Shown one piece after another: positions 17,745 to 33,488 of a stretch of DNA of 64,000 nt. Both the position numbers and the translations under genes were made by a program. Under the pieces are notes generated by a model. That model was given only the letters and a program-made list of their open reading frames with translations. It was not told where the DNA came from and searched no databases. Source of the stretch: Haplodiscus bocki. Taxonomy: Eukaryota. The DNA is taken from contig OZ296651.1 of NCBI GenBank assembly GCA_965655095.1, forward strand, positions 27,404,001 through 27,468,000, given 5' to 3'. How positions within the stretch are numbered: the first letter of the stretch is position 1; every line of letters starts with the position of its first letter.

Positions 17745-18236
17745 TGTAACATTCCATGTTACGATCGGAATGCTGAAAGCAAAGTTCATATGAGAAGAAT
17801 GCCCATTTAAACTCAAAACTCTTAATCTCCTAATCTCTTCATCACCCTTCAATCATTTAATGACGCCACATTCTTTCGATGAACTTCAAACTTTAGAACT
17901 TACCTTAAAGTCATAACGATGCTTAATTTAGATGAATATGTCAAATTACGGAAATACCTCATGATTTAAATTATCTCTTATCATTAACTTCAACCCATAT
18001 AAAATTTTGATTCAGTAGAAGCTGAGACCCAGCGAAGGAAAGTTGAATTCATAAATTGCAAACTAACCATTTCTTCCATTGCTTGAAGAGTTGTAGACAG
18101 ATCACTTGTAGCAAGTCTAACCGCGGGACCTCGCATCCAACAAGAACATTGAATCTGAAATACTTTGAGAATACTAAATACCCGCTCAGGCTAAAAGAAA
18201 ACTCAATAAAACAAGAAGACGAGGCGCGATCTTAGA
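17745..18236 (+). repeat. 5' LTR (492 bp)
   Basis: TGTAAC...CTTAGA; 4 substitutions versus the 3' LTR; AATAAA at 18205-18210. Confidence 0.97.
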
Positions 18237-18250
18237 TGGTGACAGGAGTG
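18237..18250 (+). promoter_or_regulatory. Primer binding site, tRNA-Leu-like
   Basis: TGGTGACAGGAGTG directly after the LTR. It matches the complement of the 3' end of typical eukaryotic tRNA-Leu(CAG) (TGGTGTCAGGAGTG) with one mismatch. Confidence 0.75.
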
Positions 18251-18416
18251 TGCGACGACGAGCTACACTGTGATCATCCACAACGACAACTGAAGAATCT
18301 GGACTACTGGTCTAAATAGAAGAAACAGCAGGACGATCCTGACAAAACCAGAAGATTGGGAACTCTAATTCTATTGGGAAATACAAACGACACTCTAACC
18401 CAACACTAGTGCAAAG

Positions 18417-18444
18417 ATGAAGCTGAAGACGAGTTTGGTTGCCT
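18417..18444 (+). CDS. Predicted env leader exon (MKLKTSLVA) ending at splice donor GTAAGT (18445)
   Basis: ATG AAG CTG AAG ACG AGT TTG GTT GCC T|GTAAGT. Phase 1 matches the acceptor ttttttttcAG|TG at 30121/30122 and gives the signal peptide MKLKTSLVALVTVLLAINVALP. Confidence 0.75.
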
Positions 18445-18722
18445 GTAAGTTTCACATTCGTTCTATTCCTAGAGAGTTTTAGAAGCAGTAAAATTGATAA
18501 TAGCGCTCAGATTGTTCTCAAACTGTTTGAAATCATCATCTTAATTGAAATCATCATTTTAATTCAGAGCGCCGAAGTAGTAAATTTATTTTGAGGTAGT
18601 AACTACTAAATTTCCCGTTTTTCTAAACTGATTCATTCCGTCATTCATTGTCTGTAATTTTTCGATCCGCTAAAATAAGCCCGTCACTCTTGAATTTTCG
18701 AAAACCTTGGTAATTCGCAAAA

Positions 18723-29948: not shown

Positions 29949-30121
29949 TTTGTTTGCGAACTCTGAAAAGCTCGGAATACCTTTTACACACATAAGCAAA
30001 ATCCAGCAAAAAACAAAACAAAAAAAAACAAAAACAAACATATTTCACAGCTGTCGTTTTTTTTCTCTTCCCTGACTCGCATAGTGACATATATGTTTCT
30101 TGAGCCACGCTTTTTTTTCAG

Positions 30122-32448
30122 TGGTTACTGTCCTACTGGCTATAAATGTCGCTCTGCCTTCATGGAATTCCGACATTATTGCTGATCAGGACTCTGGCGC
30201 AATCCTTGCAAATGGAATTATTTTCAATCATGTTACAAAAATTCTGTTAGCTGAAAAGTTTATCAACGTCGATTTTCTGGTCCCTTTTCCAAAGTTTGAA
30301 ATGAACGTGAGTGCTGAACTGAGCGCCTACATTAACAAACTTGCACCCCTATGGGACGCGTCTAGCTGGCAATGTCATCTTGATTACTCTACAAACTTTC
30401 AGAAAAATGATTCTACATTCGATATCGATTGGTTACTGCATCAAGTTGAGAATGAAGTTACACTTGCAGCGAAAGAACTAGAGGCTCTTCGCATATATAC
30501 TTCCTCATTCTTGAACACGGAAGACGCCACCGCTCAAAATCGAAATCGGAAGCCGAGGGCAGCGCCACTTGCAATGATGGCGCTCGCATCAGTCGGACTT
30601 TTTGGATCCGGAATAGCTTTAGGCAGCGGTAGCTGTGGATTCAGAGGTATTTTTGGATCATGTCATGATAGAGCAAAACAAAATGCAAAGAATATTGAAG
30701 AACTTGCCGAATTTACGGAAAGCCTAACGCAGGACGTTTTCAAATTACGAAATGAAGTGAATGACAAATTCTTCATGGTTACCACGGAATTAGAAGCACT
30801 TAAATCCGTCCAAAAGGAAATGCTTGAAGTCCAAAATCGTAACTGGAGAATTATCGAAGAGCACTTCGAAGTATTTCAACATAATATTCATGTACTACGA
30901 GATTGTGACCAACTTTTATTCTCAAGACAGCAAATTAATTTCAATTATGATACAATCTCATCGCTGCTTGCACTGACATTCGCAAACATCAAAAGTTATC
31001 GAGGCGCTCTTTACACTTACAAAATTAACATGATGAATTCGATACAGCCACTTCTGAATAACTATTTGCCAATGTCACTTGTTCCTAGACAAGCACTTCT
31101 AGCCATCTTAGATGATGTTGCATCGGAACAATGGAGAAAATCGGACCGACTCTCATTAGCTATACCAATGGATGAAATCATTGCTTATTACGAATCGCAA
31201 TTACTTAGAGATGTTTTAGTGGTTGAACAAGGACTCATAATGCGCATTGCAATTCCACTAGCAACGAAAGATTCAGCGTTCACGGTATTTCGCGCAATTG
31301 CAGTACCTATGCCTCAACCCGAACCAGATTTGGCAATCAAATGGAAATTAGAAGCGCCTTACTTAGCTATTTCAGAAAATAATAAAGAAACTGCATTTTT
31401 GACTGAATATGATCTTGGTAGATGCATTGGATCGTCACGTCATCAGATATGCCTAGACATGATTGCTACAGAAACAGGTCACGATTCCTGTTTGGCAACG
31501 CTGTACTTCAAAGATAGCGTGGCAGCATTACAAGTTTGTGAAACAGAGCAGATAGTATTGCCGGCAACAGAAAAAGCAGAAAACTTAGGTTATGGCGTTT
31601 GGCTTAAAACGTCTGCTACTACTGCTTATACTTTATTTGAATCAGACACAGAGTCAACTACATCATCCGGCATTGTTAAATATCCGGGATGTCGCATTTG
31701 TATAATAACATTGAAATGTGGTAAACAATTATCAGGAGACCATATAAAGATTCGGTCTGACCTTAGCACTTGTGAAGAACTGCCAGCGATTAAAGTAAAT
31801 GTTAAATTTCCAGACCCACTATTGGAATTGTGGAGTGAACTTCCTGAAATTGATGACATGCCTTATTATTCGACGAAAGCCGAAGCAGGAATAGCAATGT
31901 TAAAAGAAGTGCGAGAAACGCTACTTGATAGCCCTAAAATGCGCGACCCGAAAAAACTTTTGGAAATAGCACGCCCCATTACGACAAAAATGACGCAATT
32001 GCGTCCATCGCTCTCAAGGGAATTTGATTCCCATCTCTCTATCAGACACTCTCTCGTGATGAGCTTGATATCATTTGCTGGATCAATGTTGCTTCATGTA
32101 ATTGTTGTCTGGATTTATCATAGATATAAACATCGCAACAATGCGACGCCACTTTGGTGCGGATTATTCTGTCCGAAAAAATCTCGAACAGATGTTGAAC
32201 CCGAACAGTCAAACGAAACTCAACTTTCAGTTATAGATACTGCGCCCCGTGAATATTCTCAATTGGCTCGGACTATATCTCTCTCCCAGCAAACTCTCAA
32301 TAAAATCGAAACTGATGCAGCGACTGAAACACTTAAACGCACGATGTCGCACGCGTCTGCTCCTCAGCAAGCAGATACGCCTTACACCTATAGGGAAGCT
32401 GATGTGCCTGAACACTACAAGTCACACGGTGACATTCGTAGCGATTAA
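30122..32448 (+). CDS. env: Envelope glycoprotein, class I fusion protein (baculovirus-F/errantivirus/pneumovirus-F-like), main exon
   Basis: Hydrophobic signal segment, furin site RNRKPR (30541-30558) followed by fusion peptide AAPLAMMALASVGLFGSGIALG, heptad repeats, Cys-rich region, TM helix SLVMSLISFAGSMLLHVIVVWIY, cytoplasmic tail. No in-frame ATG before the signal segment, but a strong acceptor at 30111-30121. Confidence 0.9.
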
Positions 32449-32985
32449 AAGCTGTATATTGACCGCCTTTTTCCAAACCGTGAAAAAGGGACCATTTCTC
32501 TTAAATTTTCAAGCGGATCATTTTTATTGACTTCCTTTTTATCTTTAACTGAACTCATTTTATTCACTTCAACTGTGGTGCAAATAAATTTATAAAATAT
32601 AAAACTCTCTCTGGGACTGGAAGACTGTGTGCTGGCAATCTTTACAACACTTATTCTGGATGAACTCTTTGGTTTCTCAACATTTTCAATACACTCTTCA
32701 ATTATTCTGGATGCTCTCTTCGATACAATTTTTCTTCTTTCGATAATGAATATTCTTCCCTTCAAACATTCGATGGAATCTCAACTGAATACAATATTCT
32801 TTTCTTCCTCCATTGGTTAAGACTCTACTGTTTTGGATACATTTTGGAAAACAATATACTGTAATTGACTACACCTTTTGGTTTTGGAATGTAGAATTAT
32901 ACTAATGCAATTTTGGGTTGGCTTTTTCCATAGCAGATGAACTTCTTCGCCTTCTTCATGATGTAACCAGCGGCGAAGTGACAGC

Positions 32986-32996
32986 AAGGAGGGTAG
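32986..32996 (+). promoter_or_regulatory. Polypurine tract
   Basis: AAGGAGGGTAG immediately before the 3' LTR. Confidence 0.75.
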
Positions 32997-33488
32997 TGTA
33001 ACATTCCATGTTACGATCGGAATGCTGAAAGCAAAGTTCATATGAGAAGAACGCCCATTTAAACTCAAAACTCTTAATCTCCTAATCTCTTCATCACCCT
33101 TCAATCATTTAATGACGCCACATTCTTTCGATGAACTTCAAACTTTAGAACTTACCTTAAAGTCATAACGATGCTTAATTTAGATGAATATGTCAAATTA
33201 CGGAAGTACCTCATGATTTAAATTATCTCTTATCATTAACTTCAACCCATATAAAATTTTGATTCAGTAGAAGCTGAGACCCAGCGAAGGAAAGTTGAAT
33301 TCATAAATTGCAAACTAACCATTTCTTCGATTGCTTGAAGAGTTGTAGACAGATCACTTGTAGCAAGTCTAACCGCGGGACCTCGCATCCAACAAGAACA
33401 TTGAATCTGAAATACTTTAAGAATACTAAATACCCGCTCAGGCTAAAAGAAAACTCAATAAAACAAGAAGACGAGGCGCGATCTTAGA
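32997..33488 (+). repeat. 3' LTR (492 bp)
   Basis: Near-identical to the 5' LTR; AATAAA at 33457-33462; followed by TSD CTTTT. Confidence 0.97.

Follow-up and report, generated by a model that had tools for sequence, protein, structure and literature searches.

A single, recent insertion in the 64,000-nucleotide stretch of DNA analysed here (the window) belongs to a multi-copy, envelope-carrying Ty3/gypsy (errantivirus-like) family that, besides gag, pol and env, carries a TARG1/OARD1-type macrodomain, an exchangeable antisense cassette with a gene of predicted JmjC fold, and small genes with no assignable activity. The element occupies positions 17745-33488 in a eukaryotic host that is probably a stony coral, although that identification is indirect. 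Nothing like this gene set was found for any retroelement in the literature searched, a search that did not extend to the Repbase and Dfam catalogues. The first-pass annotation had described an env-bearing Gypsy provirus carrying a macrodomain fused to integrase, three small paralogues, an antisense JmjC dioxygenase and a possible small TM protein, and our analysis confirms that observation. Its interpretation, that the cargo forms a counter-defence cassette in a potentially infectious element, is only partly supported.

Structure of the element
The features are as follows.
17740-17744, no strand: left copy of the target-site duplication (CTTTT)
17745-18236, plus: 5' LTR, 492 bp
18237-18254, plus: primer-binding site (PBS), starting TGG directly after the LTR
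18417-18444, plus: predicted mini-exon supplying the env start codon (ATG plus 9 codons plus 1 base), followed by the donor GCCT|GTAAGT
18723-19970, plus: gag, 415 aa, with a CCHC zinc knuckle
20132-25632, plus: pol (protease, reverse transcriptase, RNase H, integrase, 360-aa low-complexity linker, macrodomain), one gene read in two frames in this copy
25105-25533, plus: TARG1/OARD1-type macrodomain at the C-terminus of pol
26067-26372, plus: small paralogue A, 101 aa
26499-26780, plus: small paralogue B, 93 aa
27111-27419, plus: small paralogue C, 102 aa counted from the ATG that aligns with the starts of A and B
27655-29943, no strand: exchangeable antisense cassette (3' region, JmjC gene, spacer and most of the small TM ORF)
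28102-29226, minus: predicted JmjC-fold 2-oxoglutarate oxygenase-like gene, 374 aa from the conserved METR start, with a basic C-terminal tail
29739-30041, minus: small cysteine-rich membrane protein ORF, 100 aa, with a hydrophobic N-terminus, six invariant Cys and a C-terminal TM segment
30122-32448, plus: env main exon, class I fusion-protein-like glycoprotein, probably F-type
32986-32993, plus: polypurine tract (PPT) just upstream of the 3' LTR
32997-33488, plus: 3' LTR, 492 bp
33489-33493, no strand: right copy of the target-site duplication (CTTTT)

The two LTRs are 99.2% identical, differing at 4 of 492 sites, which marks the element as young. The PBS and PPT were read from the sequence and from the alignment of the LTR flanks, and no tRNA gene lies in the window or in the other loci examined, which left the matching tRNA unidentified. 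Gag gave a weak Pfam hit to DUF1759, is 62-97% identical in four related loci (L002-L005) and shows dN/dS of 0.14-0.22; the pol frame opens 58 nt before the gag stop in a -1 arrangement. Pol contains the DTG protease motif, the FMDD reverse-transcriptase motif and an HHCC integrase motif, matches Pfam RVT_1, RT_RNaseH, Integrase_H2C2 and rve, and has yeast Ty3 Gag-Pol as its best PDB hit (7q5b, E 1e-43). Three points in the earlier reading required correction. First, pol in this copy is split over two reading frames by two frame-changing length differences relative to the sibling copies L002 and L003, in which it is a single ORF of 1825 and 1850 aa, and the description 'potentially infectious' therefore does not fit this particular copy well. 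Second, the 782-aa env ORF has no ATG at its start and appears to depend on a splice: the mini-exon is in phase with the acceptor TTTTTTTTCAG, which ends at 30121, the same mini-exon, phase and donor occur in L002 and in the diverged L004, and the acceptor is shared by L001-L004; the splice is predicted from sequence alone. Third, a 360-aa low-complexity linker separates integrase from the macrodomain. Env has a signal-like N-terminus, RKPR followed by a hydrophobic fusion-peptide-like stretch, and a TM segment at residues 650-674, and of its 66 homologues one (P0235; 32% identity over 680 aa, E 1e-117) passes Pfam Baculo_F.

Identity and conservation of the cargo
All cargo ORFs are uninterrupted. 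The macrodomain matches human OARD1 structures 2l8r and 4j5q (phmmer, E 3e-28) and, scanned alone, scores 24.8 bits against the Pfam Macro cutoff of 22; the catalytic Lys is invariant and the Asp is kept in 9 of 10 aligned sequences, and the domain is present at the pol C-terminus in L001-L005 and in the deeper relatives L008 and L009. The three small ORFs are true paralogues (27-31% pairwise identity; BLASTP E 1e-12 to 5e-12, with A matching C at 2e-12 and B at 5e-12), and A had no Pfam hit. Paralogue A is 54-98% identical in L002-L005 and the B protein is identical in L002 and L003, whereas a profile search found three copies in each of the window, L002 and L003, two in L004, two in L005 (one in pieces) and none in L001.

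The antisense 374-aa ORF had no Pfam or PDB sequence hit, and no Pfam JmjC or cupin model detected it even at E up to 10. However, its AlphaFold2 model (pLDDT 74, pTM 0.68) matched JmjC proteins in all 50 listed Foldseek PDB hits (best E 8e-8), and in alignments that include a relative at 20% identity, T153, H156, E158 and H233 of the T-x-x-H-x-E...K...H site are invariant and K172/K173 nearly so. The JmjC identification, which the first-pass annotation had made by eye, is thus borne out by predicted fold and motif but not by any sequence model, and we caution that it rests on a medium-confidence model, modest TM-scores (0.35-0.44) and 9-15% sequence identity in the PDB matches. Histone demethylases, JMJD6, FIH and TYW5 all match with similar scores, and the substrate class cannot be told apart. 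The gene has 21 homologues at 41-98% identity, and an AATAAA lies about 55 nt after its stop on the minus strand. The small TM ORF, upstream on the same strand, belongs to no Pfam family but is conserved at the protein level (32-52%) in L001, L003 and L004 and in the coral-metagenome contigs L010 and L011; since no coordinates accompanied the earlier 'possible small TM protein', we cannot say that the two are the same ORF.

That the cargo might be confined to this copy and evolve neutrally had been named in advance as grounds for rejection, and neither condition was found. The macrodomain, JmjC-like gene, small TM ORF and paralogues recur in independent insertions and in lineages down to 32% env identity, the same gene order being found in L001-L005 at 41-98% JmjC identity, on long contigs of three assemblies and in a Cyphastrea coral metagenome from JGI, in which contig L010 has the env start, small TM ORF and JmjC gene in the same layout. 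The flanks of L002 are unrelated to those of the window copy, and the 90%-identity clusters hold 23 (JmjC) and 66 (env) members. In deeper relatives the cargo is patchy, with the macrodomain present in L008 and L009 and the antisense JmjC gene in L007. Deep comparisons gave dN/dS values of 0.13-0.24 for the macrodomain, 0.15-0.23 for paralogue A, 0.15 for paralogue B (L004 versus L005) and 0.19-0.30 for JmjC, but dS was saturated in most of these comparisons and the values are rough, while shallow pairs gave 0.5-1.2 for the macrodomain on few differences.

The antisense cassette is exchanged as a ~2.3-kb module between near-identical backbones. The window copy had no blastn match to L003 across this interval although the backbone on both sides is 95% identical, the same pattern with similar limits was seen between L004 and L005, and JmjC dS is saturated while flanking genes have dS of 0.10-0.19.

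Possible roles of the cargo
We consider the anatomy and gene order, the membership of the cargo in the family rather than in this copy alone, the conservation of the catalytic motifs of both enzymes, and the exchange of several deeply diverged cassette types between backbones to be demonstrated by the comparisons above, whereas expression, enzymatic activity and function of every cargo gene are inferred from sequence, predicted structure and analogy. In this view, gag and pol would be translated from full-length RNA through the -1 overlap, and env from a spliced RNA joining the 28-nt leader exon to the env ORF and removing everything in between. TARG1 uses a Lys-Asp dyad to remove ADP-ribose; made as the C-terminal end of Pol, the macrodomain would travel with integrase and remove mono-ADP-ribose from element proteins or nucleic acids modified by host ADP-ribosyltransferases. 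JmjC enzymes use H-x-D/E...H plus Thr and Lys to bind Fe and 2-oxoglutarate. The antisense cassette could be expressed only from integrated DNA, through its own promoter, and we propose that its JmjC enzyme, which has a basic, NLS-like tail, acts in the nucleus as an Fe(II)/2-oxoglutarate oxygenase that removes repressive methyl marks, or hydroxylates a chromatin or RNA-processing factor, and so keeps the provirus expressed. The small TM protein and the paralogues would be accessory proteins. Deeply diverged cassette types shuffled among backbones fit long-term diversity maintained by conflict with the host, although an antisense transcript would pair with the genomic RNA, which could feed host RNA silencing rather than oppose it. 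The earlier suggestion that the cargo may erase host ADP-ribose signals and silencing marks is plausible but was not shown and remains inference from family knowledge. We assign this reading a probability of about 0.6, a figure that blends high confidence in the anatomy and family-level conservation with only tentative support for the counter-defence roles.

A less likely alternative is that the extra domains serve the element's own housekeeping, with the macrodomain, placed where chromoviruses carry a chromodomain, reading ADP-ribosylated chromatin to steer integration, and the JmjC enzyme tuning the element's own expression or hydroxylating a splicing or translation factor in the manner of JMJD6, FIH or TYW5, rather than erasing silencing marks. 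The position of the macrodomain at the C-terminal end of integrase after a flexible linker, the equally high Foldseek scores of protein and tRNA hydroxylases, and the apparent dependence of env on one long splice, which gives a motive for control of splicing, are consistent with this view. Against it, the conserved Lys and Asp of a hydrolase would not be needed by a pure reader, and the diversity and shuffling of the cassette fit conflict better than housekeeping, but neither point is decisive. It is very unlikely that the cargo consists of passenger host-gene pieces drifting in one lineage: LTR elements do capture host sequences, shallow dN/dS values are high on very few changes (for JmjC, window versus L002, 8 nonsynonymous and 1 synonymous differences) and some relatives lack the cargo, but all six JmjC ORFs examined are intact at 42-65% mutual identity (apart from the window-L002 pair at 98%) with the metal site invariant, the macrodomain is kept with its catalytic residues at 56-58% identity, the paralogues keep their reading frames at about 30% identity, position and orientation are conserved across the three assemblies and the coral metagenome, and deep dN/dS is 0.1-0.3. 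A composite of nested elements or an assembly artefact, suggested by the unusually long 4.5-kb region with genes on both strands between pol and env and by block exchange of the cassette, is least likely because no internal repeats or terminal structures occur inside the element, the same order recurs on the contigs above, the env splice sites bracket the whole region and are shared by relatives, and the window holds no N runs.

Comparison with known systems
Env-carrying Ty3/gypsy elements, including the 'ancient errantiviruses' of cnidarians and other non-insect animals (Chary and Hayashi, eLife 2026, PMC13524379), share the LTRs, the gag-pol-env order, an env with F-type class I fusion-protein features and many near-identical copies in one genome. 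That survey describes gag, pol and env only, and its text does not mention macro, JmjC, accessory or antisense genes, whereas the 15.7-kb element described here has a macrodomain at the end of pol and, between pol and env, three paralogues plus a two-gene antisense cassette. Human TARG1/OARD1 (C6orf130) aligns over its full length, its catalytic Lys and Asp aligning with conserved residues, but is a free-standing cellular protein rather than the C-terminal part of a retroelement polyprotein. Macrodomains of positive-strand RNA viruses (coronavirus nsp3 Mac1, alphavirus nsP3, hepatitis E virus) are likewise ADP-ribose-removing domains built into the replication polyprotein of a genetic parasite, and are reported to counter host PARPs (PMC5156301, PMC6521996). 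Those are MacroD-type domains in RNA viruses; the present domain is TARG1-type and sits in a reverse-transcribing element. Chromoviruses also append a chromatin-related domain to the integrase C-terminus, but theirs is a chromodomain reader and not a macrodomain with hydrolase residues, and a Pfam scan found no chromodomain here.

Other mobile elements carry 2-oxoglutarate oxygenases that could erase a repressive or regulatory methyl mark, namely the AlkB m6A demethylase domain in orchid Ty3/gypsy elements (PMC9289625) and TET/JBP genes in fungal DNA transposons (PMC12730594), but these represent different superfamily branches in plant and fungal rather than animal hosts, and the present enzyme is encoded by a separate antisense gene, not as part of a sense polyprotein or as a transposase neighbour. 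PHF2, PHF8, KDM7A, KDM2A, JMJD6, FIH and TYW5, and the JmjC proteins of giant viruses and of Leptopilina boulardi filamentous virus, share the predicted fold and the site with JmjC-like spacing, although the present protein has no PHD, F-box or other partner domains. Extra genes between pol and the 3' LTR, some on the opposite strand, include HTLV-1 HBZ, the antisense aORFs of plant LTR retrotransposons (PMC7264820) and the captured ORFs of bdelloid rotifer LTR elements (PMC5408684); the gene content differs, and here the antisense unit starts inside the element near the env 5' end, not in the 3' LTR, and is exchanged as a cassette.

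Structure and core genes of the element

The interval 17745-33488 is a single LTR element of 15,744 bp. Its 492-bp LTRs differ at 4 positions, the same five bases (CTTTT) flank it on both sides, a primer-binding site starting with TGG directly follows the 5' LTR and a short purine tract precedes the 3' LTR. No tRNA gene, as a match for the primer-binding site, lies in the window or in the loci compared with it. The window contains no N runs, and nothing in it looks human. A 65-bp piece identical to the first 65 bases of the LTR (100% to the 3' LTR, 98.5% to the 5' LTR) lies inverted at 16178-16242, about 1.5 kb upstream of the element, and may be a remnant of another insertion or of a rearrangement. 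The features discussed below are as follows.

17745-18236, 5' LTR
18417, ATG of a predicted 28-nt leader mini-exon for env, with donor GCCT|GTAAGT
18723-19970, gag, 415 aa
26067-26372, small paralogue A
26499-26780, small paralogue B
27111-27419, small paralogue C
27655-29943, region spanning the exchanged antisense cassette
28102-29226, minus strand, ORF of predicted JmjC fold, 374 aa
29739-30041, minus strand, ORF for a small cysteine-rich protein with a TM segment, 100 aa
30121, end of the predicted env splice acceptor
32448, end of the 782-aa env ORF
32997-33488, 3' LTR

The window corresponds to contig ctg87506 (286 kb) of ENA ERZ26859043, and it was compared with loci carrying related elements: L002-L005 from other contigs of the same assembly, L001 and L008 from ERZ25074608, and L007 and L009 from ERZ25071359. 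L002 is 98.5% identical to the window over 15.4 kb but has unrelated flanks, so it is a separate insertion.

Gag has a CCHC knuckle, and pol encodes, in the order given by Pfam hits, a protease with a DTG motif, a reverse transcriptase (RT) with FMDD, RNase H, and an integrase (IN) with HHCC and an rve core. The best solved relative of the RT-to-IN part is the yeast Ty3 Gag-Pol polyprotein (7q5b, E 1e-43), ahead of the foamy-virus and other retroviral entries, and together with the paired LTRs and their flanking sites this supports assignment to Ty3/gypsy (Metaviridae). The pol frame opens 58 nt before the gag stop in a -1 arrangement. In this copy, pol is read in two frames, and two length differences that are not multiples of three separate it from two sibling copies in which pol is one ORF (1825 and 1850 aa). 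These differences may reflect either a lesion or a lineage-specific frameshift signal, and we caution against describing this copy as fully intact.

The env ORF follows pol and encodes a predicted membrane fusion glycoprotein with a hydrophobic, signal-like N-terminus, RKPR followed by a hydrophobic, fusion-peptide-like stretch, 14 Cys, a TM segment at residues 650-674 and a 108-aa tail. It has no ATG near its start, but the leader mini-exon is in phase with a strong acceptor (TTTTTTTTCAG, ending at 30121), and the two, joined as they stand, give a normal signal peptide. The mini-exon, its phase and the donor recur in L002 and in the diverged L004, and the acceptor recurs in L001-L004, whereas more distant relatives have their own ATG. 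This predicted arrangement, inferred from sequence alone, matches the spliced env RNA of Drosophila gypsy. The env family has 66 members at 32-98% identity, which lie in the same position of related elements. The window's env has no Pfam or PDB hit, profiles of 5 and of 24 sequences gave only sub-threshold PDB hits to HA2 and F heptad regions, and only 1 of 24 family members tested (P0235, E 1e-117 to the window's env) passes Pfam Baculo_F, at 28.5 bits against a cutoff of 24.1. An F-type designation is therefore likely but not proven.

Accessory genes between the LTRs

The last ~180 residues of pol match five human OARD1/TARG1 structures at E 3e-28 over the whole domain and exceed the Pfam Macro cutoff when scanned alone. 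The residues aligned with the catalytic pair of human TARG1 (Lys84 and Asp125) are conserved, the Lys in 10 of 10 sequences and the Asp in 9 of 10. A 360-aa low-complexity linker (43% Pro, Ser, Thr, Gln and Glu) separates the domain from integrase. The domain sits at the same place in L001-L005 (56-96% identity) and in L008 and L009, whose env is only 41-44% identical. A word-indexed search found no pol-length proteins sharing the macrodomain, whereas an index-free search of the representative library returned 3205 relatives, mostly small OARD1-like proteins of 140-200 aa, and one other RT-RNase H-Macro fusion (P0168, 29% identity), on a 3.3-kb contig with no usable context. This 787-aa product with RT, RNase H and a macrodomain (29% identical to the window's), at 928-3289 of locus L006 (NCBI GCA_051647205.1, contig JBOFDR010000075.1, too short to give context), shows that RT-macrodomain fusions exist outside this family.

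The three small ORFs align end to end at 27-31% identity (E about 1e-12) and share their start position and reading frame. A profile search found three copies in the window, L002 and L003, two in L004, two in L005 (one in pieces) and none in L001. They have no Pfam hit, and an AlphaFold2 model of low confidence (pLDDT 63; four strands and two helices) has a best Foldseek match of only E 0.29. No convincing acceptor site was found in front of the paralogues, and a TATAAAA motif lies at 26430-26440, about 65 nt upstream of the start of paralogue B; the paralogues may have promoters of their own or be reached by splicing.

The minus-strand ORF at 28102-29226, counted from a conserved METR start, has 21 homologues at 41-98% identity but is not recognized by sequence models: none of 11 family members matches Pfam JmjC, Cupin_8 or related models at E up to 10, a family profile finds nothing among PDB sequences, and Pfam and PDB searches with the single sequence found nothing useful, a weak SPP1 hit that lies in the basic tail being dismissed. 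Only a fold search resolved it. An AlphaFold2 model from 11 sequences (pLDDT 74, pTM 0.68) gave 408 PDB matches at E <= 0.001, and all 50 of those listed are JmjC proteins (PHF2, PHF8, KDM7A, KDM2A, JMJD6, TYW5, FIH, UTX and KDM4), with a best E of 8e-8, probability 1.00 and TM-scores mostly of 0.3-0.45; these matches do not separate the subfamilies. Against viral models, JmjC and cupin-like proteins of giant viruses head the list, whereas IMG/VR holds no relatives of the JmjC ORF. T153, H156, E158 and H233 are invariant in ten sequences down to 20% identity and K172/K173 are nearly so. By spacing, these residues fit the H-x-D/E...H metal triad of JmjC enzymes, in which a Thr three residues before the first His and a Lys about 16 residues after it bind 2-oxoglutarate. 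The C-terminal tail is basic (26% Lys plus Arg over the last 70 residues), and AATAAA lies about 55 nt after the stop.

Upstream on the same strand, the ORF at 29739-30041 encodes a 100-aa protein with a hydrophobic N-terminus, six invariant cysteines and a C-terminal TM segment, conserved at 32-52% identity in L001, L003 and L004 and also present in coral-metagenome contigs. The first-pass annotation had listed a possible small TM protein without coordinates, which may or may not be this ORF. Donor-like and acceptor-like motifs between the TM ORF and the JmjC gene are not shared by relatives, and an intron there was rejected. Other short ORFs in the region were likewise rejected as genes, since the plus-strand 83-aa ORF at 29310-29561 is not conserved even in the 98.5% identical copy and the others are not conserved either. 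A search of Rfam gave no match.

Family distribution, selection and cassette exchange

The accessory genes belong to the element family. All of L001-L005 show pol-macrodomain, antisense JmjC and env in the same order, L002-L005 also carry the small paralogues, and L007, the most distant (env 32% identical), still has an antisense JmjC-like ORF between pol and env (E 1e-17). The 90%-identity clusters hold 23 JmjC and 66 env sequences. JGI metagenome Ga0126343, identified in a preprint as a Cyphastrea sp. 2 coral metagenome (10.1101/391565), holds four short contigs with JmjC relatives, one of which has the env start, the TM ORF and JmjC in the same layout; together with 38% GC, this makes a stony coral the likely host group, although by inference only. 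L001 (about 6239-16118) is a shortened derivative in which LTR-like pieces bracket about 9.9 kb lacking gag, protease, the first part of RT and the paralogues, but keeping the macrodomain region (one stop), an intact JmjC gene and most of env. In L008 (3000-5847), two integrase segments lie in tandem within one pol region, a further integrase fragment lies after env, and several minus-strand ORFs (55-157 aa) without an assignment sit where the JmjC cassette sits in other lineages.

In deep comparisons, identity falls from RT-IN (81-85%) and env (70-83%) to gag (62-70%), macrodomain (56-58%), paralogue A (54-57%), JmjC (41-49%) and paralogues B and C (about 30%). Where dS could be estimated, dN/dS was 0.13-0.24 for the macrodomain, 0.15-0.23 for paralogue A, 0.15 for paralogue B and 0.19-0.30 for JmjC, compared with 0.04-0.22 for gag and RT-IN. 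These values are rough because dS is near saturation in the deep pairs, and shallow pairs rest on few changes.

An exchange of the antisense cassette, absent from the first-pass annotation, was found in two pairs of copies. The window and L003 are 95% identical in DNA on both sides of the cassette, yet window 27655-29943 has no nucleotide match and the JmjC proteins are 43-46% identical. L004 and L005 are 91-93% identical on both sides, but across the equivalent 2.4 kb they are only 68-77% identical or cannot be aligned, and their JmjC proteins are 65% identical with saturated dS, while neighbouring genes have dS 0.10-0.19. In both pairs, one limit falls inside the start of the TM ORF and the other several hundred bases past the JmjC stop. 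All six JmjC ORFs examined are intact. The cassette therefore exists in at least five deeply diverged types that recombination moves between backbones. A nested insertion or an assembly artefact was rejected as an explanation for the element.

Possible roles and surrounding sequence

The first-pass annotation had described an env-bearing Gypsy provirus carrying a macrodomain, a JmjC gene and three small paralogues, and this observation held. Its interpretation of these genes as counter-defence was only partly supported. The anatomy, the recurrence of the accessory genes and the conservation of the putative catalytic residues were observed in the sequences, whereas splicing of env, ADP-ribosyl hydrolase activity, and oxygenase activity together with its substrate (histone lysine, protein or tRNA) are inferred. 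A bolder reading, compatible with the data but doubtful at present, is that a lineage of animal retrovirus-like elements carries its own 'eraser' toolkit, comprising a virion-delivered ADP-ribosyl hydrolase and a provirus-expressed JmjC demethylase, the latter kept in several ancient cassette types that are shuffled between backbones under host pressure. If so, ADP-ribosylation would be an anti-retroelement defence in early-branching animals, a transposon would actively undo chromatin silencing of itself, and the three paralogues and the Cys-rich membrane protein would be further host-directed accessory factors, much as in complex retroviruses.

Env-carrying Ty3/gypsy elements are now known to be old and widespread in animals but are described as three-gene elements, and this family shows that such elements can build an accessory gene set comparable in size to that of complex retroviruses, from different parts. 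In the literature searched, with Repbase, Dfam and GyDB outside the search, no retroelement was found described with a macrodomain or a JmjC gene; precedents of the same kind are AlkB in orchid Ty3/gypsy elements, TET/JBP in fungal DNA transposons, captured ORFs in rotifer LTR elements and antisense ORFs in plant LTR elements. A macrodomain in a reverse-transcribing element would extend a counter-defence theme so far tied to RNA viruses, and would point to ADP-ribosylation as a host weapon against retroelements in invertebrates. We are not aware of an earlier report of a transposon-borne JmjC enzyme in an animal, and the predicted enzyme would be a candidate for active reversal of chromatin silencing by a transposon, alongside the plant and fungal cases that use other oxygenase families. 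The exchange of deeply diverged JmjC types between near-identical backbones gives a concrete sequence-level handle on host-element conflict that can be followed across coral genomes with existing data.

The flanks of the element hold ordinary eukaryotic sequence. On the minus strand at 8705-10808, two adjoining ORFs (366 and 340 aa), the first with a reverse-transcriptase domain (RVT_1, E 7.5e-25), mark another, unrelated retroelement fragment. A complete, intronless 162-aa ribosomal protein L24e ORF at 11735-12223, overlapped by a 146-aa ORF on the other strand, may be a processed retrocopy, and its 90%-identity cluster in the protein collection has a single member. Two neighbouring ORFs with C2H2 zinc fingers at 35210-35857 and 36154-36714 are possibly tandem duplicates or exons of one gene. 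An ORF at 57058-57780, a phosphatidylserine synthase exon, has the corresponding domain at E 4e-38, and strong positive GC skew (0.15-0.29) and higher GC content mark the last 4 kb of the window (60001-64000).
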